In this document: positions 22,698-56,359 of the stretch, piece by piece
Layout of the letters: each line of letters opens with the position of its first letter
Numbering within the stretch: position 1 is the stretch's first letter
From: Macrostomum hystrix
Lineage: Eukaryota; Animalia; Platyhelminthes
Assembly (NCBI GenBank): GCA_950097015.1
Contig: CATNEN010000003.1
Coordinates: forward strand, 7,192,001 to 7,256,000
Reading direction: 5' to 3'
Length of the DNA: 64,000 nt
The notes under the pieces: model-generated
Database searches by the model: none
What the model was told of the DNA's origin: nothing
What the model saw: only the letters and a program-made list of their open reading frames with translations
Program-made: the position numbers and the translations under genes

Positions 22698-23807
22698 AGA
22701 TGACATCATGCGCATTGCGTTGCGTAAAAGTGTGGGTCCACAGTTTCGTAATAAGTTAAAAAGACCTGATTTCGCAAAAATCTTTAAAAGAAAAAAATAC
22801 CAAATAGGTGACTTAAAAGCCTTTTGACACTGAATAAAAAATGCACATAAAAGTGCTATTTTGTAACGTAAAAAGTCTTGCGTCCTGCAAAAATCTTCTA
22901 TGGTGACTTTTTGGAGCCGTGAAGTGAAAAAACGTGCGCATTTTTAAAGCTATTGAACTTACTTTTTAAGTGGATATTTTGAAAATAAGCATTTTATGAA
23001 TTGTATAACAAAATGTAATTGAAGAAAGAAATAAGTTGCTTTAGAAACTAAATTAAAATAATTTTTAAATAAATAAATTGTACATTTTAGTCGCTCTGTT
23101 CCATATGGTTTCAACAAGAAAAAAAATTCAAATCGGCTATGCTAACAGTAGCATGAAATTTTTGTCGTACGGCAAATTTGACATAAAAATTTCAAAGCAA
23201 CTTAACCAAGCAATCACTATCTAAATCTGAATTTTTTTCAAGCCTTTAATGTGTAGCTATTATATTCGCTTTTTACTTTATTTTTAGTAAAGTACTAGCA
23301 AGTTTTGCCCCCCTTCGGGGAGCAGAAATAATTAATATTCGTCTAATATATACCTTTTAGCAGGAGTACATTAAGTGTCTTTCTTAAGCTTAAGGTTAAA
23401 ATATGAATTTTTGGAGATCGTTAATAACGCATTTTAGGTAAAACAAAACTATAAACTTTTTACAGTTTTATAGTTTAGAGCTCTGTATATGTCAACGTGT
23501 TTGATAAAAATATCTTATTTATTTTATTCATAAATCTGTTAAGAGCACTTTTTTACTTAAAATACTTAAAATAAATTAAATGTTATTCCAAGAATTTGCG
23601 ACTTTCCGAGAAATGACTTGCTTTATTCCGATTTTCTTGTTGCTTGTATTGCTCATGTGTACTACAGTTTTATACACATCCCGAGAAATTTTTTACTTTC
23701 TTCATTAGTAAGTGAATTTCTTAGCCCTGCTCATCGTACTAACTGCGACTGCAATGTTCCGAACAATAAGTAGCTCAGCATTGCAACTATTGCCCTTGAT
23801 TGAGGCA

Positions 23808-25028
23808 ATAAATGACTTAAAGAGTCAGTTCAATGCAGCTATCTCATTGTGAATGGACTTTGCAAAAGCAACTGGAGCTACATCCTTCGACCTTTGGTTT
23901 GACACTTTAAATAAAGCTAACATAGGCTATATATAGGCATGATATATGATATATATTATCATGCTAAATTCCCCCTTTCTTTTCTAGTCGCACTCCTCAG
24001 CAGACTTCTCTTTTCTTATATGCCTCATACACATTGTCAAATCTTATTTTTAATCAAATCCTATATGACATAAAAGTCTATTTCAAATTAGATCCCGTTT
24101 TGATAGTTCAAAATGGTTAGCTAATATCAATGGCTAATTAAGTATCAATGGAATGGATCAATTTCTAATCTCCTTTCTTTTTCTTAATGATTCCAGTTCT
24201 GATCAGATCCTATTTCTTATCTGACCTCTTTTCTTAGTAATCCATTTTGTATCATTCTTCATTATAAATGCATGCCTGACAATTTATCTTTTAAAATAGA
24301 ATAAGGCAGGTACCAGGTGTGCAGATTCATGAATCATGGGACTGGTCTTTGTCCACTGAAACATTTTTTGTATTTCTTCAATTGCAAAACACATTGAAAA
24401 CAACAAAACAACAACAATTGAGTGAGCATCTGACAAATTTATTATTATACAAATACATATCATTATGACGTTATAAGAAAACAAACTCCAAATGTAGAGA
24501 ATTCAGTTCAATGAAAAAAGAAAAAATTGCATTGCACCTAAAAATATTACCCACAAACAGTAAACATGATGAACTTGCAGAAGGCTCCGCCAACAAGACA
24601 GTATCATTGCACAGTTCATTGCATTTGACTGCAAGAATAATGGTGTCAATCCTACTGCTTGTTGGCTTGCTTTACTCTGCACTGCTGGTCAGAGGCATTC
24701 ACTGGGGCAAGTTAAATTCACGCACTCAACGTCACACAAAAAGCTTAGCTATCACAAGTCTCTAGGTTTGCTGAAGCTGCTTCAAACCTCTCATGGCTGC
24801 ATACCCTCAGTTTTAGAGTGGAAGAACCTCTGAATCGTGAAAAAGCAGCGAACACGTTATTTCAACCACAATCTCAAGGCCCATTGATATGCAGCCAACC
24901 TGCTATATATTCACCTAATATTTACCTACATTAATTTCACTATTACTTATTAACTTTCATGGCACAACTAAATTGGGATCCGATTGTATCCGATCCTATT
25001 CTGGCTTGCCTTGATCCCAATCTAGTTA
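23808..25028. repeat. ~1.2-kb direct repeat 'A', copy 1 (Helitron-internal)
   Basis: Near-identical to 28697-29917, offset ~4889 bp; identical spurious ORFs 24284/29173 and 24511/29400. Confidence 0.93.
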
Positions 25029-25029
25029 T

Positions 25030-25515
25030 TTAGGATTTAGGATTGGGATCTAAGAGATTCTATGAATTTAGGATTGGGATATAAGAGATTCTATGAATTT
25101 AGGATTGGGATATAAGAGATTCTATGAATTTAGGATTGGGATCTAAGAGATTCTGTGAATTTAGGATTGGGATTCAAGAGATTCTATGAACTTAGGATTG
25201 GAATCTAAGAGATTCTGTGAATTTAGCATTGGGATCTAAGAGATTCTGTGAATTTAGGATTGGGATCTAAGAGATTCTGTGAATTTAGGATTGGGATCTA
25301 AGAGATTCTGTGAATTTAGGATTGGGATCTAAGAGATTCTGTGAATTTAGGATTGGGATCTAAGAGATTCTATGAATTTAGGATTGGGATCTAAGAGATT
25401 CTATGAATTTAGGATTGGGATCTAAGAGATTCTGTGAATTTAGGATTGGGATCTAAGAGATTCTGTGAATTTAGGATTGGGATCTAAGAGATTCTGTGAG
25501 TTTAGGATTGGGATC
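25030..25515. repeat. 31-bp satellite (GAATTTAGGATTGGGATCTAAGAGATTCTRT)n, short array
   Basis: Same unit, and same order of variant units, as part of 30520-33738. Confidence 0.95.
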
Positions 25516-25831
25516 TGTTATGCTCAGTTCTGTTATGCCACAAACACAATTTAGCTAAGCAACGATCTCAGTTCTGTTATGCAATGAACCCAATTTAGCT
25601 AATCATTTTGCCTAGGTAATCCCTGATCTCAATTCCATTATGATCCCATCTAATTTGAATTTATTAGGTGAATAAAGCAGGATTTGCCTGATATGTCTCA
25701 GCGGGCCATTTACATATCAGGATAAACTACTTGTGATCACTATTAAACACAGATACCAATGCGACACTGGCAGACAAACATGTACACAAGCAATACTCAC
25801 GTTAATTGCATCTTCATTAGTCTTTCAAGTC

Positions 25832-27225
25832 TTACTCGTCCATGTAATCATGTGATGGTCCAGGCTTCTCGGACACATTGGGCGCCTTAGGGGTTGACAT
25901 AGCCGGTATCTGCTGACTCCTGTAGATTTGATCTCGAGAAAAAGTCACCTGTGAAAGGAAATTTATATATACCTAATTAATTTTTTTTATTATTGTTTTT
26001 TAAATGCATAAACGTAATCTTTAGAGACAAAAGGCCTCATCGAACCAGTTAATAATGAATCTAAGCAGTCAATCACTTAATGCTTCTTTAGTAGGTTCTC
26101 TGACATCATGTTACTATTTAACCCACACGAAATAAAATTAACTTACCTCTTTGTCCCCAAATCGCACTCTAATTCTTCGCACCTCATCGAATTGGTTGAA
26201 CATTCGCTCTGGGTACTGCAATACCATTTCGTCGTCACGGATAGCATTTTTCTCCCGCTGGGAGCTTTGCGTCACGCGTAGCTCCTCGAAGCACTGTTGG
26301 CTAGAAACCGCATCCTTGTACCACTGGGTAATGTCGGAGACATCAGCAGAGTCTTCTGGCCAATGCTGAATTTCCGCTTTCGAACATCCGAGACTGATTG
26401 TCTGAGAATATTCCTGGACTTGAGCACCATGAATCGCTAGAACGTCGCCCACAGACCAGTCATTCACTTGGGCAGTAGAGCTGGACCAAAATGTGCACGA
26501 CACGGAGGACCCAGACTGATCAACAAGCGTCACTTTCGCCAGGTTGACAAGTTTTCCGGAACCGGTTTTAACTTCCGTTGGTTTCTGGACAGCAGAAATC
26601 GTGCCATAGACGTTAACATTCCTGAGATATGTGAGGCAAAGGGTGAATTTACAAGAATGCATTAACTCATTCACTAAGCAACTTCACTGACTGATTTAAA
26701 TAAGTTTTCCTAGAAATAATTGGCTAACCTAACAATTAGTGCGAATATATATTCCAAATCCTTACCATTTATTTTTAACAATTGCAACAAGTTAACTTAC
26801 ATTTTCATTTCACAGTCCGAAATCTCTTTTATCTTCTTATAGCCCGGTGCACGTCGAGTGACGGTCTCGAGGGTCCTCACAATGGTTCCACTTTGGTCAA
26901 TTGAAACTGTTAGCTCGTGCTCATTGTCCGTAGTGCTGTACCTGGGATCCGCCTTCTTCACCCAGCCGCCGGATATGCGGACGGCGACGCCCTCACGACA
27001 CACCTCCAGGAAAGGCTTAAGATCCTTTCCGAACACGCTTACACGTATATCGCCGGTGTCGTCACAGAGGATAAAGGAAAACACTTGGCCTGGTCCTCTT
27101 TTGCCTTCAAAGTCCTTGATTTTGGACAGCCTCATTACGAGGCCAACGATTGCAGCGTGCATCAGGCCCGGAAGCAGAGCAGAGATACACGCTTTGCTTT
27201 TCTTGGCTCCTTCGGTTGACTCCAT
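25832..27225 (-). CDS. Helitron-borne RPA70-like ssDNA-binding protein (two OB folds), 338 aa, 3 exons
   Basis: Exons 27225-26801, 26621-26147, 25948-25832 (1017 nt, GT-AG, in phase). KIKDFEGKRGPGQVFSFILCDDTGDIRVSVFG resembles RPA1 DBD-A; VNVYGTI...VTLVDQSGSSVSCTFW...VLAIHGAQVQEY resembles DBD-B. Confidence 0.85.
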
Positions 27226-28079: not shown

Positions 28080-28418
28080 ATGAAGTTTACGCAAAACGTC
28101 TTCTCCGGCGGCGACAGGCGGCGAGGCCGAAGTGGAGGCCAGCGCAGACCTATGGCCTGCTATCTCTGCGCGGGACCACACCCTGTGGCCCGCTGTCCTG
28201 TCGTCGCCGGAGTGCGGCAGCAGCAGCAGCCGCAGCAGCAGCAGCAGCAATTAGAGCAGCAACAGCTTGAGAGACTACAACATGCAACTATGCTGCGACT
28301 GCAGCAGCAGCAGCAGCTCCAGAACCAGCAGCAGCTCCAGAACCAGCAGCAGCTGCAGAACCAGCAGCAGCTCCAGAACCAGCAGCAGCTCCAGAACCAG
28401 CAGCAGCAGCAAAAATAA
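28080..28418 (+). CDS. Small Helitron-borne protein: RG-rich + CCHC zinc knuckle + poly-Q tail (112 aa)
   Basis: ATG start; GC-rich coding-like island in AT-rich DNA; CYLCAGPHPVARC = CX2CX3HX4C; (LQNQQQ)n tail; upstream TATA and downstream AATAAA at ~28428. Confidence 0.6.
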   Translation: MKFTQNVFSGGDRRRGRSGGQRRPMACYLCAGPHPVARCPVVAGVRQQQQPQQQQQQLEQQQLERLQHATMLRLQQQQQLQNQQQLQNQQQLQNQQQLQNQQQLQNQQQQQK

Positions 28419-28696
28419 TATTTACTTAATAAATACTTGATAAATTACTCGATAAATAAATTATATCACTTACTGGACAAATAAAAGTTTCGTGTTGCCT
28501 TCTCTTATTTCTTACTGTAAATGAGAAACTTAATTGACACAGCTCATTGAAATGATCAATTTAGAACCTAAAAATGTATAGCCATGATTCAAACTCTTTT
28601 TTTGGCATGATTCAAACTCAGATTTGCTATGATTTATGATATTGTATTTACGAAATGAAAAAATAAATTAAAATAATCTTCAATCACTACTGACTT

Positions 28697-29917
28697 AAAT
28701 GACTTAAAAGAGTCAGTTCAATGCAGCTATCTCATTGTGAATGGACTTTGCAAAAGCAACTGGAGCTACATCATTCGACCTTTGGTTTGACACTTTTAAT
28801 AAAGCTAACATAGGCTATATATAGGCATGATATATGATATATATTATCATGCTAAATTCCCCCTTTCTTCTCTAGTCGCACTCCTCAGCAGACTTCTCTT
28901 TTCTTATATGCCTCAAACACATTGTCAAATCTTATTTTGAATCAAATCCTATATGACATAAAAGTCTATTTCAAATTAGATCCCGTTTTGATAGTTCAAA
29001 ATGGTTAGCTAATATCAATGGCTAATTAAGTATCAATGGAATGGATCAATTTCTAATCTCCTTCCTTTTTCTTAATGATTCCAGTTCTGATCAGATCCTA
29101 TTTCTCATCTGACCTCTTTTCTTAGTAATCCATTTTGTATCATTCTTCAATATTAAATGCATGCCTGACAATTTATCTTTTAAAATAGAATAAGGCAGGT
29201 ACCAGGTGTGCAGATTCATGAATCATGGGACTGGTCTTTGTCCACTGAAACATTTTTTGTATTTCTTCAATTGCAAAACACATTGAAAACAACAAAACAA
29301 CAACAATTGAGTGAGCATCTGACAAATTTATTATTATACAAATACATATCATTATGACGTTATAAGAAAACAAACTCCAAATGTAGAGAATTCAGTTCAA
29401 TGAAAAAAGAAAAAATTGCATTGCACCTAAAAATATTACCCACAAACAGTAAACATGATGAACTTGCAGAAGGCTCCGCCAACAAGACAGTATCATTGCA
29501 CAGTTCATTGCATTTGACTGCAAGAATAATGGTGTCAATCCTACTGCTTGTTGGCTTGCTTTACTCTGCACTGCTGGTCAGAGGCATTCACTGGGGCAAG
29601 TTAAATTCACGCACTCAACGTCACACAAAAAGCTTAGCTATCACAAGTCTCTAGGTTTGCTGAAGCTGCTTCAAACCTCTCATGGCTGCATACCCTCAGT
29701 TTTAGAGTGGAAGAACCTCTGAATCGTGAAAAAGCAGCGAACACGTTATTTCAACCACAATCTCAAGGCCCATTGATATGCAGCCAACCTGCTATATATT
29801 CACCTAATATTTACCTACATTAATTTCACTATTACTTATTAACTTTCATGGCACAACTAAATTGGGATCCGATTGTATCCGATCCTATTCTGGTTTGCCT
29901 TGATCCCAATCTAGTTA
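28697..29917. repeat. ~1.2-kb direct repeat 'A', copy 2
   Basis: Near-identical to 23808-25028. Confidence 0.93.
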
Positions 29918-30519
29918 TGCAATGATCTCAATCTAGTTATGTGAGGATCTCAATTTAGTTATGCAATAATCCCATTTTAGTTACGCCAAAAGATCCCAAT
30001 TTAGCTAAGCAATGATCTCAGTTCTATTATGCAATGAACCCAATTTAGCTAAGCAATGATCTCAGTTCTGTTACGCCACAAACAAAATTTAGCTAAGCAA
30101 TGATCTCAGTTCTGTTATGCTATGAACCCAATTTAGCTATTGGGTTGGGAACCCAATTGGCTATTGGGAACCCAATCCGATCCTATTCTGGTTTGCCTTG
30201 ATCCCAACTCGTAGCAGAAAATTTTCATTACCTTACGGACGCCCCTCTTACTAATCATAATTCTGGTAAACAATGAATCCAATTTTCCATTCTTCAATGA
30301 TCCCATTCGTATCATGCCATGAGCCCAATTTCATTATGCGATAATTCCAATTCTGGTTTGCTATGATCCCAATTTAGTATGCAAGGATCCCAACTTAGTT
30401 ATGCCAAATGATCCCAATTACGCTAAGCAATGATCTCACTTCTGTTATGCCACAAACACAATTTAGCTAAGCAATGATCTCACTTCTGTTATGCCACAAA
30501 CACAATTTAGCTAAGCAAT

Positions 30520-33500
30520 GATTTAGGATTGATATATAAGATTCTGTGCATTTAGGATTGGGATCTAAGAGATTCTATGAATTCAGGATTGGGATCTAAG
30601 AGATTCTATGAATTTAGGATTGGGATCTAAGAGATTCTATGAATTTAGGATTGGGATCTAAGAGATTCTCTGAATTTAGCATTGGGATCTAAGAGATTCT
30701 GTGAATTTAGGATTGGGATCTAAGAGATTCTGTGAATTTAGGATTGGGATCTAAGAGATCCCATGAATTTAGGATTGGGATCTAAGAGATTCTATGAATT
30801 TAGGATTGGGATCTAAGAGATTCTATGAATTTAGGATTGGGATATAAGAGATTCTATGAATTTAGGATTGGGATCTAAGAGATTCTGTGAATTTAGGATT
30901 GGGATTCAAGAGATTCTATGAATTTATGATTGGGATCTAAGAGATTCTATGAATTTAGGATTGGGATCTAAGAGATTCTGTGAATTTAGGATTGGGATAC
31001 AAGAGATTCTATGAATTTATGATTGGGATCTCAGAGATTCTATGAATTTAGGATTGGGATCTAAGAGATTCTGTGAATTTAGGATTGGGATCTAAGAGAT
31101 TCTGTGAATTTAGGATTGGGATCTAAGAGATCTCATGAATTTAGGATTGGGATCTAAGAGATTCTATGAATTTAGGATTGGGATATAAGAGATTCTATGA
31201 ATTTAGGATTGGGATATAAGAGATTCTATGAATTTAGGATTGGGATCTAAAAGATTCTGTGAATTTAGGATTGGGATTCAAGAGATTCTATGAACTTAGG
31301 ATTGGAATCTAAGAGATTCTGTGAATTTAGCATTGGGATCTAAGAGATTCTGTGAATTTAGGATTGGGATCTAAGAGATTCTGTGAATTTAGGATTGGGA
31401 TCTAAGAGATTCTGTGAATTTAGGATTGGGATCTAAGAGATTCTGTGAATTTAGGATTGGGATCTAAGAGATTCTATGAATTTAGGATTGGGATCTAAGA
31501 GATTCTATGAATTTAGGATTGGGATCTAAGAGATTCTGTGAATTTAGGATTGGGATCTAAGAGATTCTATGAATTTAGGATTGTGATATAAGAGATTCTG
31601 TGAATTTAGGATTGGGATCTAAGAGATTCTATGAATTTAGGATTGGGATATAAGAGATTCTCTGAATTTAGCATTGGGATCTAAGAGATTCTGTGAATTT
31701 AGGATTGGGATCTAAGAGATTCTGTGAATTTAGGATTGGGATCTAAGAGATTCTATGAATTTAGGATTGGGATCTAAGAGATTCAATGAATTTAGGATTG
31801 GGATCTAAGAGATTCTGTGAATTTAGGATTGGGATCTAAGAGATTCAATGAATTTAGGATTGGGATCTAAGAGATTCTATGAGATTAGGATTGGGATCTC
31901 AGAGATTCAATGAATTTAGGATTGGGATATAAGAGATTCTATGAATTTAGCATTGGGATCTAAGAGATTCAATGAACTTAGGATTGGGATATAAGAGATT
32001 CTATGAATTTAGGATTGGGATCTAAGAGATTCTGTGAATTTAGGATTGGGATCTAAGAGATTCTGTGAATTTAGGATTGGGATCTAAGAGATTCTATGAA
32101 TTTAGGATTGGGATCTATGAGATTCTATGAATTTAGGATTGGGATATAAGAGATTCTATGAATTTAGGATTGGGATCTAAGAGATTCTGTGAATTTAGGA
32201 TTGGGATCTAAGAGATTCTGTGAATTTAGGATTGGGATCTAAGAGATTCTATGAATTTAGCATTGGGATCTAAGAGATTCTATGAATTTAGGATTGGGAT
32301 ATAAGAGATTCTATGAATTTAGGATTGGGATCTAAGAGATCCCATGAATTTAGGATTGGGATTCAAGAGATTCTATGAATTTAGGATTGGGATCTAAGAG
32401 ATTCAATGAATTTAGGATTGGGATCTAAGAGATTCTATGAGATTAGGATTGGGATCTCAGAGATTCAATGAACTTAGGATTGGGATCTAAGAGATTCTGT
32501 GAATTTAGCATTGGGATATAAGAGATTCTGTGAATTTAGGATTGGGATCTAGGAGATTCTATGAATTTAGCATTGGGATCTAAGAGATTCCATGAACTTA
32601 GGATTGGGATCTAAGAGATTCAATGAACTTAGGATTGGAATCTAAGAGATTCTGTGAATTTAGCATTGGGATCTAAGAGATTCTGTGAATTTAGGATTGG
32701 GATCTAGGAGATTCTATGAATTTAGGATTGGGATCTAAGAGATTCTATGAATTTAGGATTGGGATCTAAGAGATTCTGTGAATTTAGGATTGGGATCTAG
32801 GAGATTCTATGAATTTAGGATTGGGATCTAAGAGATTCTATGAATTTAGCATTGGGATATAAGAGATTCTGTGAATTTAGGATTGGGATCTAGGAGATTC
32901 TATGAATTTAGCATTGGGATCTAAGAGATTCCATGAACTTAGGATTGGGATCTAAGAGATTCAATGAACTTAGGATTGGAATCTAAGAGATTCTGTGAAT
33001 TTAGGATTGGGATCTAGGAGATTCTATGAATTTAGGATTGGGATCTAAGAGATTCTATGAATTTAGGATTGGGATCTAAGAGATTCTGTGAATTTAGGAT
33101 TGGGATCTAGGAGATTCTATGAATTTAGGATTGGGATCTAAGAGATTCTATGAATTTAGGATTGGGATCTAAGAGATTCTGTGAATTTAGGATTGGGATC
33201 TAAGAGATTCTGTGAATTTAGGATTGGGATCTAAGAGATTCTATGAGATTAGGATTGGGATCTCAGAGATTCAATGAACTTAGGATTGGGATCTAAGAGA
33301 TTCTGTGAATTTAGCATTGGGATCTAAGAGATTCTGTGAATTTAGGATTGGGATCTAGGAGATTCTATGAATTTAGCATTGGGATCTAAGAGATTCCATG
33401 AACTTAGGATTGGGATCTAAGAGATTCAATGAACTTAGGATTGGAATCTAAGAGATTCTGTGAATTTAGCATTGGGATCTAAGAGATTCTGTGAATTTAG

Positions 33501-33738
33501 GATTGGGATCTAGGAGATTCTATGAATTTAGGTTTGGGATCTAAGAGATTCTATGAATTTAGGATTGGGATCTAAGAGATTCTGTGAATTTAGGATTGGG
33601 ATCTAGGAGATTCTATGAATTTAGGATTGGGATCTAAGAGATTCTATGAATTTAGGATTGGGATCTAAGAGATTCTGTGAATTTAGGATTGGGATCTAAG
33701 AGATTCTGTGAATTTAGGATTGGGATCTAAGAGATTCT
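30520..33738. repeat. 31-bp satellite, long array (~100 units), inside the Helitron
   Basis: Directly visible; period 31. Confidence 0.97.
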
Positions 33739-34063
33739 GTGAGTTTAGGATTGGGATCTGTTATGCTCAGTTCTGTTATGCCACAAACACAATTTAGCTA
33801 AGCAACGATCTCAGTTCTGTTATGCAATGAACCCAATTTAGCTAATCATTTTGCCTAGGTAATCCCTGATCTCAATTCCATTATGATCCCATCTAATTTG
33901 AATTTATTAGGTGAATAAAGCAGGATTTGCCTGATATGTCTCAGCGGGCCATTTACATATCAGGATAAACTACTTGTGATCACTATTAAACACAGATACC
34001 AATGCGACACTCACAGACAAAATGACACAAGTAATACTCACTTCAATGACGCCTGGAAATCGC

Positions 34064-37000
34064 CTAATCTCCAGTGAGCACTTCTGGATACACCACGTTT
34101 CTGGTCTTGGTGCCACAGATCCGGACGCGAACATTCGCGGCGTTCTTCGCCCGTGACAGCGCCGTGTACAGCTGACCATGAGTGAAGCAACCGACAGCCA
34201 GGTCAACTCCAACGGTCTCCAGGGATTGTCCTTGTGCTTTGTGTATTGTAAGGCAGAAGCTCGGCTTCACCGGAAACTGCAGCCGCTTGAAACTCACTGG
34301 TAGATCCGCATTGTTTGGAATCAGCGGAATTCGCGGCAGCAGGATCTCGTCTCCAGTGAACTGACCGGCGGCAATCTTGCAGCGCAGCACATTATCGCCC
34401 ATCGTGAGAACGATGAGCCGTGTACCGTTGCACAGCCGCGGCGGGTTGATATTCCGAAGAAGCACCAGCGGCATGCCCACCTTGATCCTGAGCAGATAAG
34501 TTGGAAAATTCGGGGCATCCAGCTGGTTTAGCAACTCCGTCGGGAAATGCGTAGCGGCCTCCTCATCAGCCAGGCTGTCTACAGAGCGATACTCTCGCAG
34601 GCAACCCGGGAAAATGCCCAGACACGTCTCGTTGATGGCATCAACAGAGTCGTTGTACGGCGCCAGTATCGCTCGACTTGCAAAATAGTCGTCCCGCTCC
34701 GCTGATTCTTCAAACGACGGGTACACGAACTTGATCAGGTCATTCAGCGGAGCCTCTGCAGAAATCACCATCTCAGCGGGAAGGGACACCTTCTCCTCAG
34801 CATCCTGCTCGATTGTCCCGGTTCCGATCTGTGAAAAGAAAAGCAATAAAAACATGAAACATAATATTCGCAATGATTCGCGAGAAAAAATGATTTTTAC
34901 ACCCCATTCTCACCTGCATGAGTAGCTCCGTGAACTTCTGGTACATCGCTGGCTCGGAGCTGCACAGCAGACGAATGTTTCTCGTCAAGCGATGTCGCTT
35001 GAAAAGTTTCCACAGCGAAGATCTGCAGACACACGCCATGACGCTGTTGGCGCGGGTTCCATTCACTACGACAGGCAGGAGCTGGCGGAAGTCACCGGAA
35101 CACACCAGAGTGACTCCTCCAAATGGCTTGTCCTGCTTCCGAACGTCTCGCAGACACCTGTCCACGGATTCCAGATCCTTTCGATTGGTCATGGAGATCT
35201 CGTCCCAGACAATCAGCCGAACTCTACGAAACACTTCCGCTTGCTTGGACTGCGCGCCAACAGCGCAGACATCCTTGTTGGATCGGAGCAGCCGGACTGG
35301 GATCTTGAACCTAGAGTGAAGTTGTCATAGGTAGAATCGATTAGAAACGCGACTCTATAAAATTCAGAAGCATTCCCCTAATCTAAAAAACTTACGTGGA
35401 ATGCGCAGTCTGTCCGCCTGGCAGCAGAGTCGCTGCGATTCCAGACGCCGCAACGGCCAGGGCGAGTTCACCGCGGCTGCGCACGAAGGCCAGCAAAACC
35501 TCCAGCAGGAAGGTCTTGCCAGTGCCAGCGGGCGCGTCCAGGAAGTGCAAACCGCCCGAGCCGGCCACAAGATCCGCAGTCACCGACTCGTACACCGCAA
35601 TCTGCTCCTCCGTCAGCATTGACAGTCTCGCTTCCCGGATCTCGGCCTGTTCAACCGGGTCGAACTGCATCGGTCCGACTTGAGGCGGCACGGAGGCCGC
35701 AGGCAAGCCGTACTCGGGCAGGCTGTGACCGCCCATGGAGGTCAGCATGCTCTGCAGCTCGCGCAGCGCCAGGTCGGTGATTTCCTCAGCGCTCAGATCT
35801 CGGTGGTGAAACCGCAGGTCCTCGCACAGATCCTCGGCGAATGTGCACCACAGATCGCTGCCATCCTCAGGGTTGCCCCAAATCAGAATGACAGCCAGCA
35901 GGTGCCTGAGAGCTCTCGGCATTCGCGACTGGACTGCCTCGGCTAGGCAGCGCCGCCAGTGGTCGTCTCGTTGCAGCAGACCCAGGGCCGTGCAAGCAGC
36001 CTTGGCGCTGGGACACAGCACTCCGTCCACAGTGTGCAGCGCCTCGAAGCTGGTTGGCCCTCTAACCTGCAGGAGGAGCATTCGCATATAAAACAGATCC
36101 CCTGCTCTCGGACTCACCGTGTACATTCGGGCAATGTTCGTGTTGTGCACAACACCAGGGTGGCCCTCAACTCTCGAACCCTTCTTGGCGCGGCGCCACT
36201 CCCTCTCGCTGTGGTGCCACACGAAGTAGGACGGCACCTCGGTGTACACCAGGCCTCTAGCGAATTCATCAGTGCGGCACAGCTTGAAGAAAGCCGTCAG
36301 CGTCGAATCTCTGGGCGCCCTGGCCTTTGTGCTCGCATTTTGCTCGTTGAAATACACGAGCTGCTCGTTAGACTTGTGCACGCACAATCGGATCACAGCC
36401 GGAAATCTGTTGTGCACCTGTTGTGTTTTAGTTTAAAAACCAAATTATTATTTTCCCATTCTTTGCTCCTAGCACTGCCTTGCAAACATCTATGACTTAC
36501 TTCAAAGCCCAAGATGGTATTCACGGCTTCCATTGGGCCTATGTAGCGCGCCAGCAGATACTCCTTGATCTCATTTCGCCCCTCCTTCTTGGCTTGAGTC
36601 GGAGCCTTGCTAGCTGAACCTTCCTGTCGTTCGCCATCCGCAGCCTGCTCTCCTGGCCCGCTCGGCTTCTTGTTTGCCTCGAACTTGAACGACGCCATGT
36701 CGCCGCCTTTTAGCAAGTACTTGATCACGTACTTGACCGACTTGACGGTGGCACAAACTTCAAAGTTCATGTGGCATTCGAAAAGGAGCAGCAGGCCCGG
36801 GTTGTATGGTACAACCCACCTGTATTTGTGCCAGGAAAAGAATTGCTAATTAATGATTTATGTATTCTAGCAATGGTAAATTAAACTTACAGTAAATAAA
36901 CAATTTAGCAATATAAATAAACTAAACACAAGGCTAAACTAAGTACTTTGCTTTCGTATTAAAGAATCAACCTTTCAATCAAGTCTGAAAAAACACCAAC

Positions 37001-40000
37001 ACCTCCTCACTCACCTGTTGTCCATGCGAATGCTGCGGCCTTTGAATAGTTTGTCCACCGTGAATCCGCCCATCTCAGGGGACAGCCTGCGATACAATGG
37101 GTAGCCAGTATCGCTGGTTAGGGTCGCCTGCTGGAACTCCTTCGGGAAGCCCTTGCTGCACTGGCCGTCCACCATGCACGGGCAGGCTGGATTTACCACG
37201 CCGCAGGGGCCATGGATCATGTGAGTCTTCACCAGCTCGTGCAGCCTCGGCTGCTGCTGTGGGTCCGGGATCTCAGCGGACACGATTTTGTCGTAGCGGT
37301 CCGGAGTCACTCTCTGTCCACTGACCAGCCAGAGCAGAAAGTGCACATGGGGGAGACCTGCGGAAGACATAAATAAATAAGTGATTCAAAGCAACGTATG
37401 ATTGCGAAATCCCTTGCATAAAAATATGGATAGCTAAACCTGGAATGTATAGCAATGCAATCCTTGAACTCAAAAGTCTGTAATTACAGAAAGAAAATTG
37501 AAACCGCAAATCGCTCACTTACCGCGCTTCTGATACTCCAGAGAGCAAACATGTGCGGCCTCCTTTCCAAAGCGCTTCCTCAGCTCGGCAAGCAGAGCCT
37601 TCTTCTTCAGCTCGAAAACGCGCGTGACAATATCCGGCCGGTCCTCAGGTCGCTGTCCAGGTAGCAGCTGTGCGCTGATTTCCGTCCACTTAGGGTTGCA
37701 CGTCGCCGTGACAAACAGGTCCGGCTTGCCAAACTTTTGTACGTAGGTCATGGCGTCTTGCAGCCTCTCCATCAGGTACCTTGGCCCGCCAACGAAGCTG
37801 GAGGACAGGAATACGTGCGCAGGCTTGCCAATATCAGTCGGATTTGTGTCGGTCGACCTGCCATCAGCAGCGAATAGAGCGTCTCGCAGACCGCTGTACG
37901 TCTCACTGCGCAGGTCGCTCTGATGGGTCCGCAGATAGAGCAGCCTCTCTGACTCAATCTTGGCGCACATATCCACCAGGTACTGCTGGAACAGCCTCCG
38001 TCCGTAGTGCAGCAAGCTGCTCTGGCCAGCTCGCACCATGATTTCGCTGGCATAGTACTTCATCGGCGTCAGCTTGCGGCCATTGCTCATGCGCAGCTCA
38101 GGGTGCCAGCCGTCCTCGCCATGGGGGAACAGCAACACGTACTCCAGTGCATCATACGATCGGTGCGTTTTGCTAATCCTCTTGTAGCCGCCACCCCGCA
38201 GTTGAATGACAACATCTCGGCTAGTTGCTGGCTCATCACCGTCTTCAGGGGCCTCAGTATCCTCAGTGTCCTTAACAATGAGGATGCCGACCTCGTTTGC
38301 CGTGGGCAAATTGTAGCGCCTGATTTTGAACGGTAGTAACAAATGCTTTTAACAAAACTCTTTACAACGGTAAACATTTCTGTGTACACAGGCACAAAGC
38401 TTTAAAAGACAGGTTTTAAAATGTGTTCGAATCCCTTTTCAGTTATTGTTAGCTCACCGAATGTGTTCCCCAGAAGGCCTCCGGTCCGGGTGAATCACGA
38501 TTCGCGCATCCACAAGCTCCGGATCCTCCATGATCCGCTGTGCTGCAGCCTTCAGGCTCCGAACGTAAAGGTTGCACTCGTGAAGCAACGTCTGTAGCAG
38601 CTCATGTAGCTCTGGCTTCACCCTATCGCTCAGACTCTGCTGGCTTTCGAGTTCGCGGTCAGTGAAGTACACCTGCCAGCCGCGAGGAACAGCAGACGCT
38701 TCAGCAAACAGCGGCATAGCAGTGTGGTGCAGCTGACCGCTGATGATGTAGCTGGGATTCCAGCCTGGCACCAACCGCGGCTTGGCACTCAGCGAGGTCA
38801 GGTGCAGCACAGAGTTGTAGCTCCGGATGTTGGTCAGGAACTCTGAGCTCATGCCATGCCGGCCCATGTACAGGTCAGCCAGCAGCTGTGGCACAGTCCG
38901 GGTGGGCAGCTTCACCTTGCCGCCAGCACAGCAGAAATTGCCCGTCTCCATGCGGAACAGCTTGGCACCGCAATGGTTGCATGCCCAGTCCATTGGCCCG
39001 CAGTCATGGGCTGGGGCTTCTGGCCTCGCCATCGTCTCAGGCCTGATAAAAAATGGAATGTATCTCTTAGTAACTGTTAAATGTAAATGTAACTGTTAAT
39101 TGTGTGTCAGTTTACCTTGCAGTAGCGGGTCCGTCTTCAGCGCGGCCCGCAGTCTCATGTTCCGCCGGCATCGCGCTGGGGCCCTTGGCCTTTTTGGTCT
39201 TCTTGGCAGGAGTTCTGCTTGCTGCCAGGCTTGGGAACTCAGCATCTGTAAAGGCTTGCAAAGGCTCTCGAAGTCTCAGTGACTCGTAATGTTCATGGCG
39301 CAAAAGCACACGCACAATGGCATTAGGAGGGCGCAAATTAGCCCTGAAATATTGCATCACACTACCATTGGCCTGGTAAATGACCAGGTCCACATTAAAG
39401 CAGCGGCTCAACAAAGAGGCAACTTCATCTGAAACATAAATTCCTGCTTGAAAAGAGGAATTCACGATCTCATCAGCACTTTCAGGTGCAATAAGGCCAT
39501 CTGCAACCAGCTGTGGCATGAGTTCTGCAACACGGCAAGACAAGTCCTGCCGCAGGGAGGCTGCGTCAGTTTCCAGCGGGGTTCCACGCAGCTGATCACA
39601 CACAGCATAAAAAAAGCAATTGCCATCACCAACAATGGGGATTACCTGCAACTGCTCAAAGGGTACAATAGATTCTGTACCTTGCTGCTGAGTGTCCGAC
39701 CTAAGGGGCAATGGGTGAACGTAAGCACAGCTGCCTTAATTGGCTTTTTAAGACAATTCATTCCTCAAAAATCGCTGTCCGCTTAATTTATACAGAATAA
39801 AATGGATACTACAAATTATCCCCTTCAAGGCAATTCAGAAAAAAAAGAAAAATAAAGACTTGTTATAAAACGGCCATAAAACTCACCTAGAAACCACAGC
39901 TCCACGGCGACGAATGCGATCGGCTTCCAATCGGGCAGCCTGCTCTGCCTCAGTCTCAGCATGTCTGCGCTGAGCATCCCGCTGCCGCTGTTCTTCCAGT

Positions 40001-40641
40001 CGGGCAGCCCGCTCTGCCTCAGTCTCAGCATGTCTGCACTGAGCATTCCGCTGCCGCTGTTCTTCCAGTCGGGCAGCCCGCTCTGCCTCAGTCTCAGCAT
40101 GTCTGCACTGAGCATTCCGCTGCCGCTGTTCTTCCAGTCGGGCAGCCCGCTCTGCCTCAGTCTCAGCATGTCTGCACTGAGCATTCCGCTGCCGCTGTTC
40201 TTCCAGTCGGGCAGCCCGCTCTGCCTCAGTCTCAGCATGTCTGCACTGAGCATTCCGCTGCCGCTGTTCTTCCAGTCGGGCAGCCCGCTCTGCCTCAGTC
40301 TCAGCATGTCTGCACTGAGCATTCCGCTGCCGCTGTTCTTCCAGTCGGGCAGCCCGCTCTGCCTCAGTCTCAGCATGTCTGCACTGAGCATTCCGCTGCC
40401 GCTGTTCTTCCAGTCGGGCAGCCCGCTCTGCCTCAGTCTCAGCATGTCTGCACTGAGCATTCCGCTGCCGCTGTTCTTCCAGTCGGGCAGCCTGCTCTGC
40501 CTCAGTCTCAGCATGTCTGCACTGAGCATTCCGCTGCCGCTGTTCTTCCAGTCGGGCAGCCCGCTCTGCCTCGGATTCTGCCTGTCGCCGTCGCTTGGCA
40601 TCGCGGCTCTTCTTTAAACTGCTGGCGCCGCGTCGAACCAT
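34064..40641 (-). CDS. Helitron RepHel transposase: STPR-like repeats, OTU protease, Zn finger, Rep (HUH/Y2), PIF1 helicase; ~1855 aa, 9 exons
   Basis: Exons 40641-39887, 39700-39116, 39042-38458, 38319-37523, 37357-37015, 36819-36501, 36417-35396, 35310-34914, 34828-34064 (5568 nt, all GT-AG, in phase, no stops). Motifs: GDGNCFF...HY (OTU), CNHCGA...FCC, PDLFVTATCNPKW, EYQKRGLPHVH (HUH), KYVIKY (Y2), DAPAGTGKT, WDEISM, GDFRQLLPV, TIHKAQGQS, HGQLYTALSR. Confidence 0.95.
39940..40578 (-). repeat. 69-bp coding tandem repeat (23-aa ETEAERAARLEEQRQRNAQCRHA, 9 copies plus a partial)
   Basis: Visible in exon 1 of RepHel. Confidence 0.95.
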
Positions 40642-41129
40642 GATTGAGAAATGAGAAGCGAAATGAAATAGTTGAGAAAGAATGATATGGTTTGAAAGAT
40701 GAAAGTTTGTGGATTTGGATGTCTGAAGAATCAGATAAGGCGCCCTTTAGCCAAACTAATTTGCAGGCTATTTATCATCCAGTGGGCTGAATTGGAGCTT
40801 ATCTTAAGACGCAGGGTAAAAACTGAAAAATCGATAAAGAAATAGGGGTCTAAATCTAAAACCTATGATTTGGCGTGTGGGCTCTCCAGGCCCGTGCGTC
40901 CACATTCCGGGGCAGAGGGCTCACAATGTACACTGGTCTGCGCCAGTCAGTGAGAAAAGCTGTGATGTGTCTCGCCAGTGGGGTTGACACAGTTATCTAG
41001 TTATCTACATTTGACACACTGCAATTCTTATCAGTGTTATAACCAGTATCACTGATATCAGTGATATCATCAATATCAGTGATAATCAGTATCACTTTTA
41101 ACAAAACTGGCTTTGGAAAACTGCTTTTG

Positions 41130-43445
41130 CCATTATTCAAACTCTGGTTGGCTATGATTCAAACTCTGGTTGGCTATGATTCAAGCTCTGGTTTAGCCAT
41201 GATTCAAACTCTGGTTTAGCCATGATTCAAACTCTGGTTTAGCCATGATTCAAACTCTGGTTTAGCCATGATTCAAACTCTGGTTTAGCCATGATTCGGA
41301 CTCTGGTTTAGCCATGATTCAAACTCTGGTTTAGCCATGATTCGGACTCTGGTTTAGCCATGATTCAAACTCTGGTTTAGCCATGATTCAAACTCTGGTT
41401 TAGCCATGATTCAAGCTCTGCTTTAGCTATGATTCAGACGCTGGTTTAGCCATGATTCAGACTATGGTTTAGCCATGATTCATACTATGGTTTAGCCATA
41501 ATTTAGACTCTGGTTTAGCCATGATTCAAACTCTGGTTTTGCAATGATTCAAGCTCTGGTTTAGCCATGATTCAAACTCTGGTTTAGCCATGATTAAGAC
41601 TCTGGTTTATCCATGATTCGGACTCTGGTTTAGCCATGATTCAAACTCTGGTTTAGCCATGATTCAAACTCTGGTTTAGCCATGATTCAAACTCTGGTTT
41701 AGCCATGATTCAAACTCTGCTTTAGCCATGATTCAAACTCTGGTTTAGCCATGATTCAGACGCTGGTTTAGCCATGATTCAAACGCTGGTTTAGCCATGA
41801 TTCAAACTCTGGTTTAGCCATGATTCAAACTCTGGTTTAGCCATGATTCAGACTCTGGTTTAGCCATGATTCGGACTCTGGTTTAGCCATGATTCAAACT
41901 CTGGTTTAGCCATGATTCAAACTCTGGTTTAGCCATGATTCAAACTCTGGTTTAGCCATGATTCAAACTCTGGTTTAGCCATGATTCAAACTCTGGTTTA
42001 GCCATGATTCAAACTCTGGTTTAGCCATGATTCAAACTCTGGTTTAGCCATGATTCAAACTCTGGTTTAGCCATGATTCAGACTCTGGTTTAGCCATGAT
42101 TCAAACTCTGGTTTAGCCATGATTCGGACTCTGGTTTAGCCATGATTCAAACTCTGGTTTAGCCATGATTCGGACTCTGGTTTAGCCATGATTCAAACTC
42201 TGGTTTAGCCATGATTCAAACTCTGGTTTAGCCATGATTCAAGCTCTGCTTTAGCTATGATTCAGACGCTGGTTTAGCCATGATTCAGACTATGGTTTAG
42301 CCATGATTCATACTATGGTTTAGCCATAATTTAGACTCTGGTTTAGCCATGATTCAAACTCTGGTTTAGCCATGATTCAAACTCTGGTTTAGCCATGATT
42401 CAAACTCTGGTTTAGCCATGATTCAAACTCTGGTTTAGCCATGATTCAAACTCTGGTTTAGCCATGATTCGGACTCTGGTTTAGCCATGATTCAAACTCT
42501 GGTTTAGCCATGATTCGGACTCTGGTTTAGCCATGATTCAAACTCTGGTTTAGCCATGATTCAAACTCTGGTTTAGCCATGATTCAAGCTCTGCTTTAGC
42601 TATGATTCAGACGCTGGTTTAGCCATGATTCAGACTATGGTTTAGCCATGATTCATACTATGGTTTAGCCATAATTTAGACTCTGGTTTAGCCATGATTC
42701 AAACTCTGGTTTAGCCATGATTCAAACTCTGGTTTAGCCATGATTCAAACTCTGGTTTAGCCATGATTCAAACTCTGGTTTAGCCATGATTCAAACTCTG
42801 GTTTAGCCATGATTCGGATTCTGGTTTAGCCATGATTCGGACTCTGGTTTAGCCATGATTCAGACTCTGGTTTAGCCATGATTCGGACTCTGGTTTAGCC
42901 ATGATTCAAACTCTGGTTTAGCCATGATTCAAACTCTGGTTTAGCCATGATTCAAACTCTGGTTTAGCCATGATTCAAACTCTGGTTTAGCCATGATTCA
43001 AACTCTGGTTTAGCCATGATTCAAACTCTGGTTTAGCCATGATTCAAACTCTGGTTTAGCCATGATTCAAACTCTGGTTTAGCCATGATTCGGACTCTGG
43101 TTTAGCCATGATTCAAACTCTGCTTTAGCCATGATTCAGACGCTGGTTTAGCCATGATTCAGACGCTGGTTTAGCCATGATTCAAACGCTGGTTTAGCCA
43201 TGATTCAAGCTCTGGTTTAGCCACGATTCAAACTCTAGTTTAGCCATGATTCAAACTCTGGTTTTGCCATGATTCAGACTCCGGTTTAGCCATGATTCAG
43301 ACTCCAGTTTTGCCATGATTCAGACTCTGGTTTAGCCATGATTCAGACTCTGGTTTAGCCATGATTCAGACTCTGGTTTAGCCATGATTCAAACTCTGGT
43401 TTAGCCATGATTCAGACTATGGTTTAGCCATGATTCAAACTCAGG
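41130..43445. repeat. 23-bp satellite (AGCCATGATTCAAACTCTGGTTT)n, ~100 units, inside the Helitron
   Basis: Period 23; a variant block recurs at ~41413, ~42241 and ~42586, indicating higher-order duplication. Confidence 0.97.
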
Positions 43446-46400
43446 TTTTCTATGAGAAACTCAGCTTTGCTATGATTTATGATATTTTATTTACGAAATG
43501 AAAAAATAAATTAAAATAATCTTTAATCACTACTGGCTGAAAGTTAGTCTAAATGATTTGACGCAGTGCAGAATCGAACCCTAGCCTAGACTAACCTATT
43601 CCTAGTGCCTACACATCGGCTATTCCGACTGTTGGTTAGTGGGTGCAGAAATCAGCCTTATAAAATGAATTCTCAAAGTTCTGGCTTTGTACAATGAAGT
43701 AAGAAAATAGACTACACTCAGTCTCGCGGTTGGTTGTGTACATTTATTTCAAATTTGTCTCCAGAGTGCAGGCTTCTAACTCAGTCAGCGAGGGGGTGTT
43801 GCGCAATTTGACGATGCAATTCCAATTCAGCGGCAGTGAGTAAAATTCTCAATAGGCCAAGATGGTTTGACCTTTGAAAAAGGTCATGTTTTTCGAATAT
43901 TTAATCCCCTTAGCAATAAAGTTAAGCTTAATAAAAATACGTGTATAATTGTCCCCATATTTGGCATCTTTTGGTGAAGAAATGGTGAAAATCGGTTGAG
44001 CCGTTCGGAAGAAAATCAATTACAACCAACCAACCAACCAACCAACCAACCAACCAAGCATTTCATTTTTAGTATAGTGGATTCTACTACCTTATAAATA
44101 CTTGTTTTACAATATATTGTATGCTACAAGTACAAGTTTTACTTGTAAATAATTCAATTGTTACATAGACCTATTTTACATTGTAAGTGTAAGCTTATAG
44201 TTTTCTTTTAAATACTAACTGATGTATAGTATTTGAATAATATTTTATTATTCAAACATTATTTACTTATAGAAGGCGTAGATAATTAAGCAGAAGTGTT
44301 TATGTATTAGGGTAATGTATCATCAACTGAAAAGTGTATCTTCAAAACCGAACAAGAATTTTGACTCCTTCCTTGGTCTCATGCAAGACAGAAACAAGCT
44401 ATTGTGTTTCACAGAACAACTAATTTGAAAGTTGAAGAAATTATACGTTGGCGACATTTTACCGCGCGGTAAAAACCGCTAACTTTACCGCATAGTAATG
44501 TCAACACATTACACATTGTGAAATTATCTACAATCTGAGGCATGATGTGCAATGAAGCATTAAGAGGAAAGAAAGATATTGATGTTTCAGTAGAAATTTT
44601 TATTGCAAAAGCATACTTTTTAACAACATTTTTCCAGTATGTACTTTAGACAAAGATTGTATGTGGTTGCTTGCCAATTAAATGACCATAAATGTAGTTA
44701 TTTATAGAGCATGAAAAATGCTTTCAAATGACATTATTCATGATAGTTCACTCCTTAAAATAAGATTAAACCACTCACTCAAATTGTAAAACCAAACATC
44801 GAATTCTCTGTTTGGTTTGAAGATACATGAAAATCATTGTTCAGTTTTAGATAAAAAGCAAGAATAACTTTTTTTCTATTTGATAAAATAGCAAAAGCAG
44901 ATACTTTTTAGAAAGATGTAACTGTTTTCTATAACTTGGCTTTTGATTTATCATCATATCTTAAATAGAAAATCTGTAGCTTAGGTTTGAAGTAAAAAAA
45001 ATACACATTCTTGTTTGGTTGATGATACATTACCCTAAACAAGATTCTTAGCAGTTTAATGCAATAATGCAGTTTTTTGATTGATAGTTGCTAAATTTTT
45101 ACCAAAGCAAAGCTCTTGAAATGCACCATTTGCATTTTTGCAATTAATTGCCTTTTGGCGATTTATAGTGCAATTTGGGCTGCAATGGCTGCAGAATTAT
45201 TATAAGCAAAGCACTTACAAAACAAACCATTTGCCTGTTTGGCAATTAACTGCCTTTAGGCAATAACTACTGTGAGATTAGTTAAATGCTCAATGCTTTT
45301 TGTTTTAGGCATGGCAGTACTTTTCTCTCAACATTGATTTGGATATTGATTGATTTATTTGATTTGTTTTGCATTTTTAAAGCTACTATGTCTAATTATG
45401 GACTTAGCTAAATAATTAGCCTAGGCCTAGGCCCTACCTAATGTTGGGTAACTTGTATTGAATGGCAAAGCATTTCACTGCAAAGGCATATCTTGTGATT
45501 TCACATGGGTGTTAAAATATACATTTAAAATGCTTAATTTATTGGAAAATCTCATTTTAATATAAAGACACAGTGAACAGAATCCGAGTATTAAAAAGTT
45601 TTTAAAACCTAACTATGTTGTTAATTATAAGACTTTTTTTACAGAAATTTTCAATTTATTAAGGTAGCATGTTCACTTTCAACTTTGTAAATTTATTACC
45701 ATTGTTAGCTATTCTACTTAGCCCATTTGTAGAATAACTAATAAACAATATTTAGTTTTTTTAATCTAATTTTAAATATATAAATTATTATTTAGTATTT
45801 TTCTACCAATAGCATAAATTGTATTGTTCAGATTTTCTTTTTAGAATTCCTAACCCAAATATACAGAATGTCCAAGATTTTCTATTATGAGTATTATTTA
45901 TTGGACTTTAGTATATGATGTTAATTCATGTGGCTCACTTTGATTTTTAAGTCTATTTAATAGAACTTTGTGATAAAAAATTAATGAATGGTAAATTATA
46001 ATTAATTAGTCACACAGGACATCTGTAACTAAAAAAACTTAGCATCTAAGTAGTTTACAATATTTTAGCATTTTTAGGGTCTTTTGTGTTGCAAAACTGT
46101 TTGCTTTCTACAGTATTTGGTTTAGGGCTGCATCTATAATTGGAAACAATAAGCTTCTGGATATCTACATTTCAGGCTTCAAAACATTATTATTTTTTAT
46201 CGGCGGCAAAACTATAAGACACAGCTCAAATACTACAGTGGCAGTGGCAGAGGTCGCAGCGGTGGCAGTGATCGCGGATGTGGCAGAGGCGGAGGCACTT
46301 GCTTTTGCAACAAAGGGGCGGCTACTGCTAGCGTGGCGAGTGATTTTTGCAACCCAAACCAAGGGGCGGCTGCTACGATCGCTAACAATATTGAGAGGGG

Positions 46401-56332: not shown

Positions 56333-56359
56333 ATGCTGCTACTACTGCTGCTGCTGCTG

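Follow-up and report, generated by a model that had tools for sequence, protein, structure and literature searches.

In the main text of HELIANO (PMC11417382), STPRs are almost exclusive to the Helitrons classed as HLE1, in which an OTU domain lies upstream and an RPA gene downstream of RepHel; the same text proposes DUF6570 as a marker of HLE2, and mentions neither zinc-knuckle or CCHC domains nor flatworms. The rice Helitron Mothra shows recent polymorphic insertions and "levels of autonomy" among its members (PMC4683698), while in one model put forward for the head-to-tail Helitrons of maize insertion occurs at an AT in which the A belongs to the host and the T is the first of a resident element (PMC2267711). 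Here, we describe a Helitron of the flatworm Macrostomum hystrix, contained in a stretch of 64,000 nucleotides (GCA_950097015.1, contig CATNEN010000003.1, positions 7,192,001 to 7,256,000 of the forward strand; hereafter the window, to which all positions refer unless another locus is named). A first-pass annotation of the window had proposed an intact canonical Helitron with three genes, encoding RepHel, an RPA-like protein and a zinc-knuckle protein. As a whole, the explanation that best fits the locus, and one that is very likely correct, is that of an autonomous HLE1 Helitron carrying three genes and belonging to a young, transcribed family.

Exact ends and an empty site

The element is read from the minus strand, opening with TCCACTATACTAAAAATGAA at 44081 and closing with ...TGCTCCCCGAAGGGGGGCAAAACTTGCTAG at 23295 (Table 1). 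In a genome search with the 5′ end and its flank, homology begins exactly at 44081 in at least 40 genomic copies, the flanks of which are all different, and the 3′ end at 23295 is likewise common to copies with differing flanks. In the 220-Mb assembly there are 438 occurrences of the exact 3′ 17-mer and 0 of its reversed control. The 3′ hairpin, with a stem of 8 bp, stops 11 nt short of the terminus. Aligning the first 60 nt to the reverse-complemented last 60 nt brought out no terminal inverted repeats (score 5, shuffle mean 6.4). The window holds a single 5′ end and a single 3′ end; the 3′ end of a second family was sought in the window and not found.

The insertion itself is documented by an empty site. 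At C38 (L035 2435-2484) both flanks of the element are joined, ...GGTAGTAGAA|TACTTTACTAAAAATAAAG..., a junction that can also be written GGTAGTAGAA|TACTTTAC, exactly as predicted for insertion between A and T with zero duplication and zero loss. The left flank (20754-23294, 2.5 kb) is 99.92% identical between C38 and the window, and the right flank is about 99% identical from 44082 onwards. Given this precision, all 20,787 bp arrived as a single unit. C38 and C3 have at least 3.8 kb of flanking sequence in common, and window positions 50000-58000 gave no C38 match; consequently, the segment shared with C38 is local. Two points call for caution, namely that the C38 site may be a paralogue rather than an allele and that transposition is deduced here from sequence comparison only. 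In either case, allele or young paralogue, the insertion postdates a divergence of 0.1%. In combination, the ends shared by the copies and the empty site establish one canonical TC/CTAG Helitron, real and precisely bounded, and bear out the earlier reading of both termini and of the AT target. A second indel separates the two loci, the C38 copy carrying about 1.16 kb of extra sequence (L035 731-1889) relative to window position ~44648, between segments that are 99% identical.

The RepHel gene and its transcripts

Introns were chosen by splice-consensus ranking of GT-AG pairs, and protein searches were run exon by exon, the joined coding sequences being used only for frame checks and dN/dS. An initial intron scoring, based on local alignment to an intronless guide, was dropped as it favoured introns that delete coding sequence. 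The resulting model of gene 1 has nine exons with GT-AG introns and 5,568 nt of coding sequence, encoding 1,855 residues without an internal stop. Pfam searches of nine minus-strand open frames returned Helitron_like_N (1.9e-45), PIF1, Pif1_2B and UvrD_C_2, and the HUH, two-tyrosine, Walker A and Walker B motifs are all present (Table 1). The last exon matches only Pif1_2B and UvrD_C_2 in Pfam and contains no C-terminal AP endonuclease, in agreement with the first-pass annotation, which had noted the lack of one. Helraiser (7lcc) was the sole match in the PDB, with exon 3 corresponding to its residues 115-282 (4.8e-5) and exon 4 to residues 318-590 (1.3e-46). [quoted passage not shown]

RNA contigs from four runs of four studies were mapped to positions 34000-39920 only; three of the runs were taken to be RNA by guess, whereas the fourth, a wastewater metatranscriptome, is RNA on record. 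Joints in contigs from three studies, among them the run that is RNA on record, match introns 2 to 8 to the base, with GT..AG ends on the minus strand, and these spliced joints identify the matching contigs as RNA. In one contig of 1.9 kb the OTU exon is spliced to exons 3 and 4, and the OTU and Rep domains therefore belong to one protein.

Intron 1 (39886-39701) behaves differently, in that splicing was not seen in the mapped contigs and those of two runs read through it. This weighs against the full nine-exon model, since the repeat exon may then lie outside the main protein; in addition, without the repeat exon no ATG precedes the catalytic cysteine in the OTU exon. The donor AG|GTGAGT and the acceptor CCCCTTAG|G are kept in all nine copies compared, and the interior varies between copies by indels of -1, +2, +10 and -13 nt, as expected of an intron. 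The exon with the 23-residue repeat probably forms the front of the RepHel protein. The uninterrupted nine-exon gene of the first-pass annotation thus holds as regards the open frame, the motifs and the RNA-supported introns 2 to 8, whereas intron 1 is read through in the contigs of two runs.

As a separate observation, the wastewater metatranscriptome runs X13 and X14 contain 27-29% of the RepHel words of the mapped interval, and X13 includes three spliced RepHel junctions at 95-99% identity. Accordingly, that wastewater is home to the worm, or to one of its close relatives, in which the Helitron is expressed.

The OTU domain and the 23-residue repeat

Exon 2 alone falls below the gathering threshold of the Pfam OTU family (PF02338; 13.6 bits against 23.3, E 0.1). 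A phmmer search of 1.8 billion representative proteins with this exon nevertheless gave 21 matches at E ≤ 1e-3, and when 19 of these were aligned with the query exon, 13 of the 20 sequences matched Pfam OTU, the query exon itself not being among them; one of the aligned relatives additionally has Helitron_like_N. The profile found OTUD3 as its best match (1.6e-40), followed by OTUD5 and nairovirus OTUs, compared with 0.0016 for the exon alone against OTUD3. The columns D25, G26, N27, C28 and H137 are nearly invariant. By homology, exon 2 thus encodes a real OTU domain with its catalytic Cys and His retained, in agreement with the N-terminal OTU assigned previously.

The assignment of the preceding repeat to STPR was not supported. 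The exon comprises 9.4 units of 23 residues, the 69-bp units being 98% alike and ranging in number from 2 to 12 among copies. STPR (PF21107) scored 9.9 bits against a threshold of 27 (E 1.4) on this exon. Comparison with the solved STPR of FMBP-1 (PDB 5d23) gave E 0.25; the core of STPR repeats is ET..(E/Q)RAxRL, and the likeness consists of ET..ERAARL, which aligns in register, and of the period of exactly 23 residues. The top PDB match was the neck of DC-SIGNR, another 23-residue repeat, and periodicity alone therefore drives much of the score. The repeat is best described as STPR-like, its identity as an STPR not being established.

The RPA-like gene

Downstream of RepHel, the open frames 27225-26797 and 26674-26138 match the DNA-binding domains DBD-A and DBD-B of RPA70, respectively; DBD-A corresponds to residues 176-283 of human RPA70 (4.3e-8) and DBD-B to 1jmc (0.016). 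In Pfam, REPA_OB_2 (39.7 bits) and tRNA_anti-codon (35.9 bits) both exceed their thresholds of 27. The N-terminal OB fold and the zinc-binding DBD-C of full RPA70 are missing from the model, which ends in a 110-residue tail without a Cys4 motif. Alignment of copies shows GTAAGT donors and CAG acceptors to be kept, with AT-rich and indel-rich sequence between them, and in exon 3 (38 codons) 5 of the first 7 differences are synonymous changes at third positions. Over the 338 codons dN/dS is 0.28-0.33, measured against a subfamily of 92% identity. A protein search with an RPA exon returned two unspliced Logan ORFs only, which are uninformative on splicing. Gene 2 is accordingly predicted to encode a protein of the RPA70 A/B type with two OB folds, and the three-exon RPA70-like gene proposed earlier is retained as a predicted gene.

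The small plus-strand ORF

The candidate third gene, a small ORF opposite to RPA, starts 855 bp from the RPA start in divergent orientation. Its predicted product runs from MKFTQN through an RGG-rich stretch and C-YL-C-AGP-H-PVAR-C to polyglutamine (polyQ). Three sequence variants of the region exist, and all 6 intact copies keep the Met-initiated frame together with the RGG, CX2CX3HX4C and polyQ parts; a seventh, deleted copy retains only the motif and the polyQ tail. Third codon positions account for about half of the differences (16 of 31-37 and 30 of 56), and dN/dS is ~0.3-0.4 over 45 codons. In a genome search the ORF adjoins RPA head-to-head at about 20 loci, including families in which RPA identity ranges from 52 to 99%.

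Several observations argue against a third gene. No Pfam family matched the ORF at E ≤ 1, and residues 1-56 had no homologue among 5.8 billion proteins. The spacing CX2CX3HX4C, present in all variants, departs from the CX2CX4HX4C of canonical zf-CCHC, and the ORF is short and half low-complexity, the polyQ half arising from 6/18-bp repeats. Copies that agree at 92-97% in the flanks drop to 68-73% identity in the small-ORF region, and between the window and the 12.99-Mb copy on C1 the small ORF has a dS of ~0.6 next to an RPA gene with a dS of 0. Furthermore, the models of both this ORF and RPA derive from sequence alone, the RNA mapping having covered RepHel. These points give weight to a Helitron with two genes, in which the ORF would be no gene but an open frame spanning the promoter region of RPA and a microsatellite of the CAG type. 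We regard this as the less probable reading, albeit one to be taken seriously, in view of the Met-initiated frame in 6 of 6 intact copies, the parts kept across three variants, the third-position differences and the pairing with RPA even where the identity of RPA between families falls to 52%. The discordant dS values point to recombination between co-resident lineages, the small-ORF region of the window belonging to another lineage than the copies with which it shares an identical RPA. On balance, the pattern of conservation tips towards the small ORF being a real gene, with a fair measure of doubt. Of the zinc-knuckle protein annotated here, the conserved small ORF stands, whereas the knuckle itself has non-canonical spacing and no Pfam match.

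A young family with probable recent movement

Across the Rep exon, identity among nine RepHel copies is 98-100%. Eight copies that were compared measure 13.6-20.5 kb and differ mainly in array length and by deletions, two copies on C1 having 20,473 and 20,155 letters. RPA or the small ORF would not belong to the element if other copies ended so as to leave them outside, a possibility raised in the first-pass annotation; six other copies with different flanks have the same gene order, with both genes inside the same termini. As the exact 3′ end occurs 438 times, most family members must be non-autonomous. A sister copy at 16.44 Mb on C1 is 100% identical to the window element over 6,164 bp and has a frameshifting indel in exon 8. 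This locus (C1:16434001-16464000) is a mosaic, being identical over RepHel but with identity down to 92% across its first 600 bp, and its 5′ end is of the TCTAATATAC type. Between copies, RepHel dN/dS is 0.08-0.18.

The near-identity of the copies could also be attributed to segmental duplication of an intact-looking but immobile relic, given that duplication does occur here, C38 and C3 having their flank of at least 3.8 kb in common, and that some copies are clustered on C1. This is improbable, as copies occur at exact TC and CTAG ends within unrelated flanks, the duplicated C38 segment precisely lacks the element, dN/dS values well below 1 between copies speak for selection during the spread, and spliced RepHel transcripts exist. 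Judging from the 99.9% identity at the empty site, the 100% identity over 6.1 kb, the spliced transcripts and the dN/dS well below 1, the element has very probably moved recently, in line with the earlier suggestion that it may still be active.

Assignment to HLE1

The TC and CTAG ends, the hairpin at the 3′ end only, the A|T target and the lack of both inverted repeats and an endonuclease all fit HLE1. DUF6570 gave no match in the exons, while a genome-wide scan matched 18 other loci, none of them in the family of the window element; the absence of this marker from the family, with 18 loci elsewhere serving as a positive control, again leads to HLE1. It counts against the firmness of this assignment that it was made from ends, target and domain markers and not from a RepHel tree. 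The combination of OTU and RPA could, moreover, be read as placing the family in the Helentron/Helitron2 group (HLE2), or as marking an intermediate resembling a proto-Helentron, since both have long been reported mainly from Helentrons (PMC4067079) and HLE2 elements of the same genome have an OTU domain 36-39% identical to that of exon 2. We consider this highly unlikely in the light of the terminal features and of the missing DUF6570; in addition, RPA lies downstream of RepHel, as in HLE1 according to the HELIANO text (PMC11417382), and the best solved relative is Helraiser.

The DUF6570-positive HLE2 elements have intronless ORFs of 1,418-2,100 residues (C38:21970604-21977818, C8:3072724-3087180, C7:1973896-1975653 and C38:3039598-3053982). 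With OTU present both in these and in the HLE1 family, both Helitron groups of this animal carry the domain. These HLE2 elements, like the divergent families and the RPA-only loci, are described from search coordinates alone.

Two modules in one element

Self-comparison shows the same scaffold twice over, consisting of an array, a gene, a post-stop module (~290 bp), a 31-bp array and a segment X (1.2 kb); the first copy holds RepHel and the second the small ORF and RPA. The 86 bp ahead of the 5′-proximal 23-bp array recur directly past the first X, and at the inner junction ~514 bp are missing from a 3′ end and ~540 bp from a 5′ end. Forms with a single module occur as well, the C29 copy consisting of RepHel only, while at loci on C35 and C1 both RPA and the small ORF are found together with the 3′ end and no RepHel match lies nearby. 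As read from these comparisons, the element most likely originated when two head-to-tail Helitrons fused and about 1 kb was lost from the inner junction. That the locus still consists of two adjacent Helitrons, one with RepHel and a non-autonomous one with the small ORF and RPA, would agree with the doubled scaffold, with the single-module forms and with the great abundance of head-to-tail Helitrons in the genome, and it describes the origin of the element well; for its present state it is contradicted by the empty site, at which 20,787 bp arrived as one unit, and the single 5′ and 3′ ends, the sequence gone at the inner junction and the same two-module order in six other copies with unrelated flanks leave it a very remote prospect.

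The GTGAGT with which the post-stop module opens, and which therefore resembles a splice donor, lies 24-31 nt past each stop (25806 and 34047, minus strand). One RNA contig continues unspliced through 34047 down to 34000.

Insertion at resident Helitron ends

In 8 of the 9 autonomous copies, a Helitron 5′-end sequence directly follows the CTAG. These downstream 5′ ends belong to several subfamilies (TCCACTATAC..., TCTAATATAC..., TCTTATATAC...), and the neighbours are therefore not concatemers of one element. In the genome as a whole, 137 of the 438 exact 3′ ends (31%) abut a Helitron 5′ signature. In the window, the 12-mer ACTAAAAATRAA is found only in the flank TACTTTACTAAAAATAAAG and at the element's own 5′ end, against 0.08 occurrences expected, and the C38 empty site shows that this Helitron-like flank was present before the insertion. 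The copy thus landed exactly at the boundary between the A of the host and the T of a resident Helitron-like 5′ end, which directly documents the maize model (PMC2267711) for one insertion. Long head-to-tail arrays with periods of 3.7-5 kb are also found in the genome, e.g. at C14:695499-720898 and C1:25816461-25848518.

The spliced mRNA of gene 1 encodes a protein combining an OTU protease, a Cys-rich N-terminal domain, the HUH/two-tyrosine Rep and the Pif1 helicase. By analogy with Helraiser, Rep would nick at A|TC, the helicase would peel off one strand as far as the hairpin and CTAG signal, and the peeled strand would circularise before being pasted between A and T. The RPA-like protein may coat the single-stranded intermediate, and the small RGG/CCHC-like/polyQ protein could, as the least certain part of the scheme, be a nucleic-acid-binding helper. 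A further and more speculative proposal, which we put forward tentatively and hold to be possible rather than likely, is that the A|TC left boundary of resident Helitrons, the nick site of Rep, serves the family as a homing target, repeated homing building up head-to-tail arrays; that end-bypass then fuses composites such as the window element; and that the small protein is a third transposition factor, e.g. a chaperone of single-stranded DNA. In the Helitron literature searched, no description was found of a third Helitron-specific transposition factor of the RGG/CCHC-like/polyQ type.

The neighbouring host-like ORFs of the window encode an AIG1/GIMAP-type GTPase (48612-49559, minus strand, 7e-36), a RhoGEF-PH protein (57311-59116, minus strand, 1e-12 and 2e-10) and an AAA+ lid fragment (8252-9049, minus strand).

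Table 1 Features of the Helitron and its flank in the window, in order along the element
Feature	Position	Strand	Remarks
Whole Helitron	23295..44081	minus	20,787 bp; ends common to many copies and C38 empty site
5′ terminus TCCACTATACTAAAAATGAA	44062..44081	minus	host A at 44082
23-bp tandem array, ~101 units	41121..43448		between 5′ end and RepHel; length varies between copies
RepHel exon 1 (probable): ATG and 9.4 copies of 23-residue Arg/Glu-rich repeat, STPR-like	39887..40641	minus	
Exon 1 repeat, 69-bp units	39924..40572	minus	
RepHel exon 2: predicted OTU cysteine-protease domain (DGNC...H)	39116..39700	minus	profile search; RNA splices to exons 3 and 4
Intron 2 joint	exon ends 39042 / 39116		RNA contigs
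RepHel exon 3: N-terminal Cys-rich domain	38458..39042	minus	matches Helraiser residues 115-282
Intron 3 joint	exon ends 38319 / 38458		RNA contigs
RepHel exon 4: first part of Rep domain (Helitron_like_N)	37523..38319	minus	Helraiser 7lcc, E 1.3e-46
Intron 4 joint	exon ends 37357 / 37523		RNA contigs
RepHel exon 5: HUH motif RGLPHVHFLL	37015..37357	minus	motif straddles exon 4/5 junction
Intron 5 joint	exon ends 36819 / 37015		RNA contigs
RepHel exon 6: two-tyrosine motif VKYVIKYLLKG	36501..36819	minus	
Intron 6 joint	exon ends 36417 / 36501		RNA contigs
RepHel exon 7: Walker A AGTGKT, opening part of Pif1 helicase	35396..36417	minus	
Intron 7 joint	exon ends 35310 / 35396		RNA contigs
RepHel exon 8: Pif1 helicase, Walker B VWDEISM	34914..35310	minus	
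Intron 8 joint	exon ends 34828 / 34914		RNA contigs
RepHel exon 9: Pif1 2B and C-terminal helicase domains, then stop	34064..34828	minus	
Post-RepHel-stop module, starting GTGAGT	33760..34047	minus	97.6% identical to 25517-25806, which follows RPA stop
31-bp tandem array (~104 units), then 22/44-bp repeats	29901..33759		
Module X	28696..29900	minus	99.1% identical to 23809-25011
Small ORF, 112 aa (amino acids): RGG-rich, CX2CX3HX4C, polyQ	28080..28418	plus	head-to-head with RPA
RPA70 DBD-A/B-like gene, predicted	25832..27225	minus	exons 27225-26801, 26621-26147, 25948-25832; 338 aa
Second 31-bp array, 15.5 units	25035..25516		
3′ hairpin TGCTCCCC-GAA-GGGGGGCA	23306..23324	minus	fold of last 60 nt
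3′ terminal CTAG	23295..23298	minus	host T at 23294
Flank TACTTTACTAAAAATAAAG	23276..23294	minus	resident Helitron-5′-end-like sequence, predates insertion

Comparison with known Helitrons

The first-pass annotation had called the combination of parts unusual and OTU domains a feature mainly of Helentron-type elements. The former was overstated and the latter is out of date, as the HELIANO text (PMC11417382) already reports STPRs, OTU and RPA in HLE1, and since this was in place in 2024 the novelty is moderate. Nor do any of the present findings call for the self-sufficient, virus-like module envisaged in the annotation. What is new in the window element is the splicing of OTU onto RepHel, the conserved third ORF, the two-module build and the insertion at resident 5′ ends. 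In the Helitron literature searched, we found no account of OTU joined to RepHel by splicing, of a conserved RGG/CCHC-like/polyQ ORF paired with RPA, of a two-module build with single-module relatives, or of flatworm Helitrons. Helitrons that occur naturally and are apparently still mobile are seldom available for study, and Helraiser, which serves as the main experimental model, is a reconstruction. The present family offers exact ends, an empty site, spliced transcripts and graded members (RepHel only, RPA and small ORF only, or both), and it makes testable the roles of OTU and RPA in rolling-circle transposition, the small protein as a helper, and the formation of head-to-tail arrays and composite elements. 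As regards annotation, ORF-based surveys can miss OTU-RepHel fusions made by splicing.

Relative to HLE1 as described in the HELIANO text (PMC11417382), the element has the same OTU and RPA extras, along with an STPR-like repeat; there, OTU and STPRs are treated as separate ORFs, whereas here RNA splices OTU onto RepHel. With Helraiser and canonical HLE1 (PMC4778049, PMC5876387) it shares the TC start, the CTAG end with hairpin and insertion between A and T without duplication, and its colinearity with Helraiser, which takes in the Cys-rich domain, the HUH/two-tyrosine Rep and the Pif1 helicase, extends over residues 115-590 and beyond. Helraiser is a single ORF, however, while the element has eight introns, an OTU and a repeat exon, two more genes and kilobase arrays. 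Compared with the Helentrons of mites and other hosts (PMC4067079), the RPA is of similar size (358 residues there, likewise DBD-A and DBD-B) and the OTU catalytic residues are kept in both, but the T-T insertion, subterminal inverted repeats and C-terminal AP endonuclease of those elements are all lacking here. The RPAs of plant Helitrons form a plant-only clade (PMC4683698), whereas the present one comes from an animal host, has DBD-A and DBD-B only in 338 residues and is paired with a conserved small ORF. Rice Mothra (PMC4683698) similarly combines its own RPA gene and tandem-repeat blocks with semi-autonomous RPA-only members and RepHel-bearing sisters, and the RepHel-only and RPA-only relatives found here parallel its levels of autonomy. 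Finally, the exact CTAG|TC junctions are the same as those reported for the head-to-tail Helitrons of maize and bat (PMC2267711; cited in PMC5876387), to which the present element adds an empty site for one such insertion and a pattern that is frequent, at 137 of 438 3′ ends.

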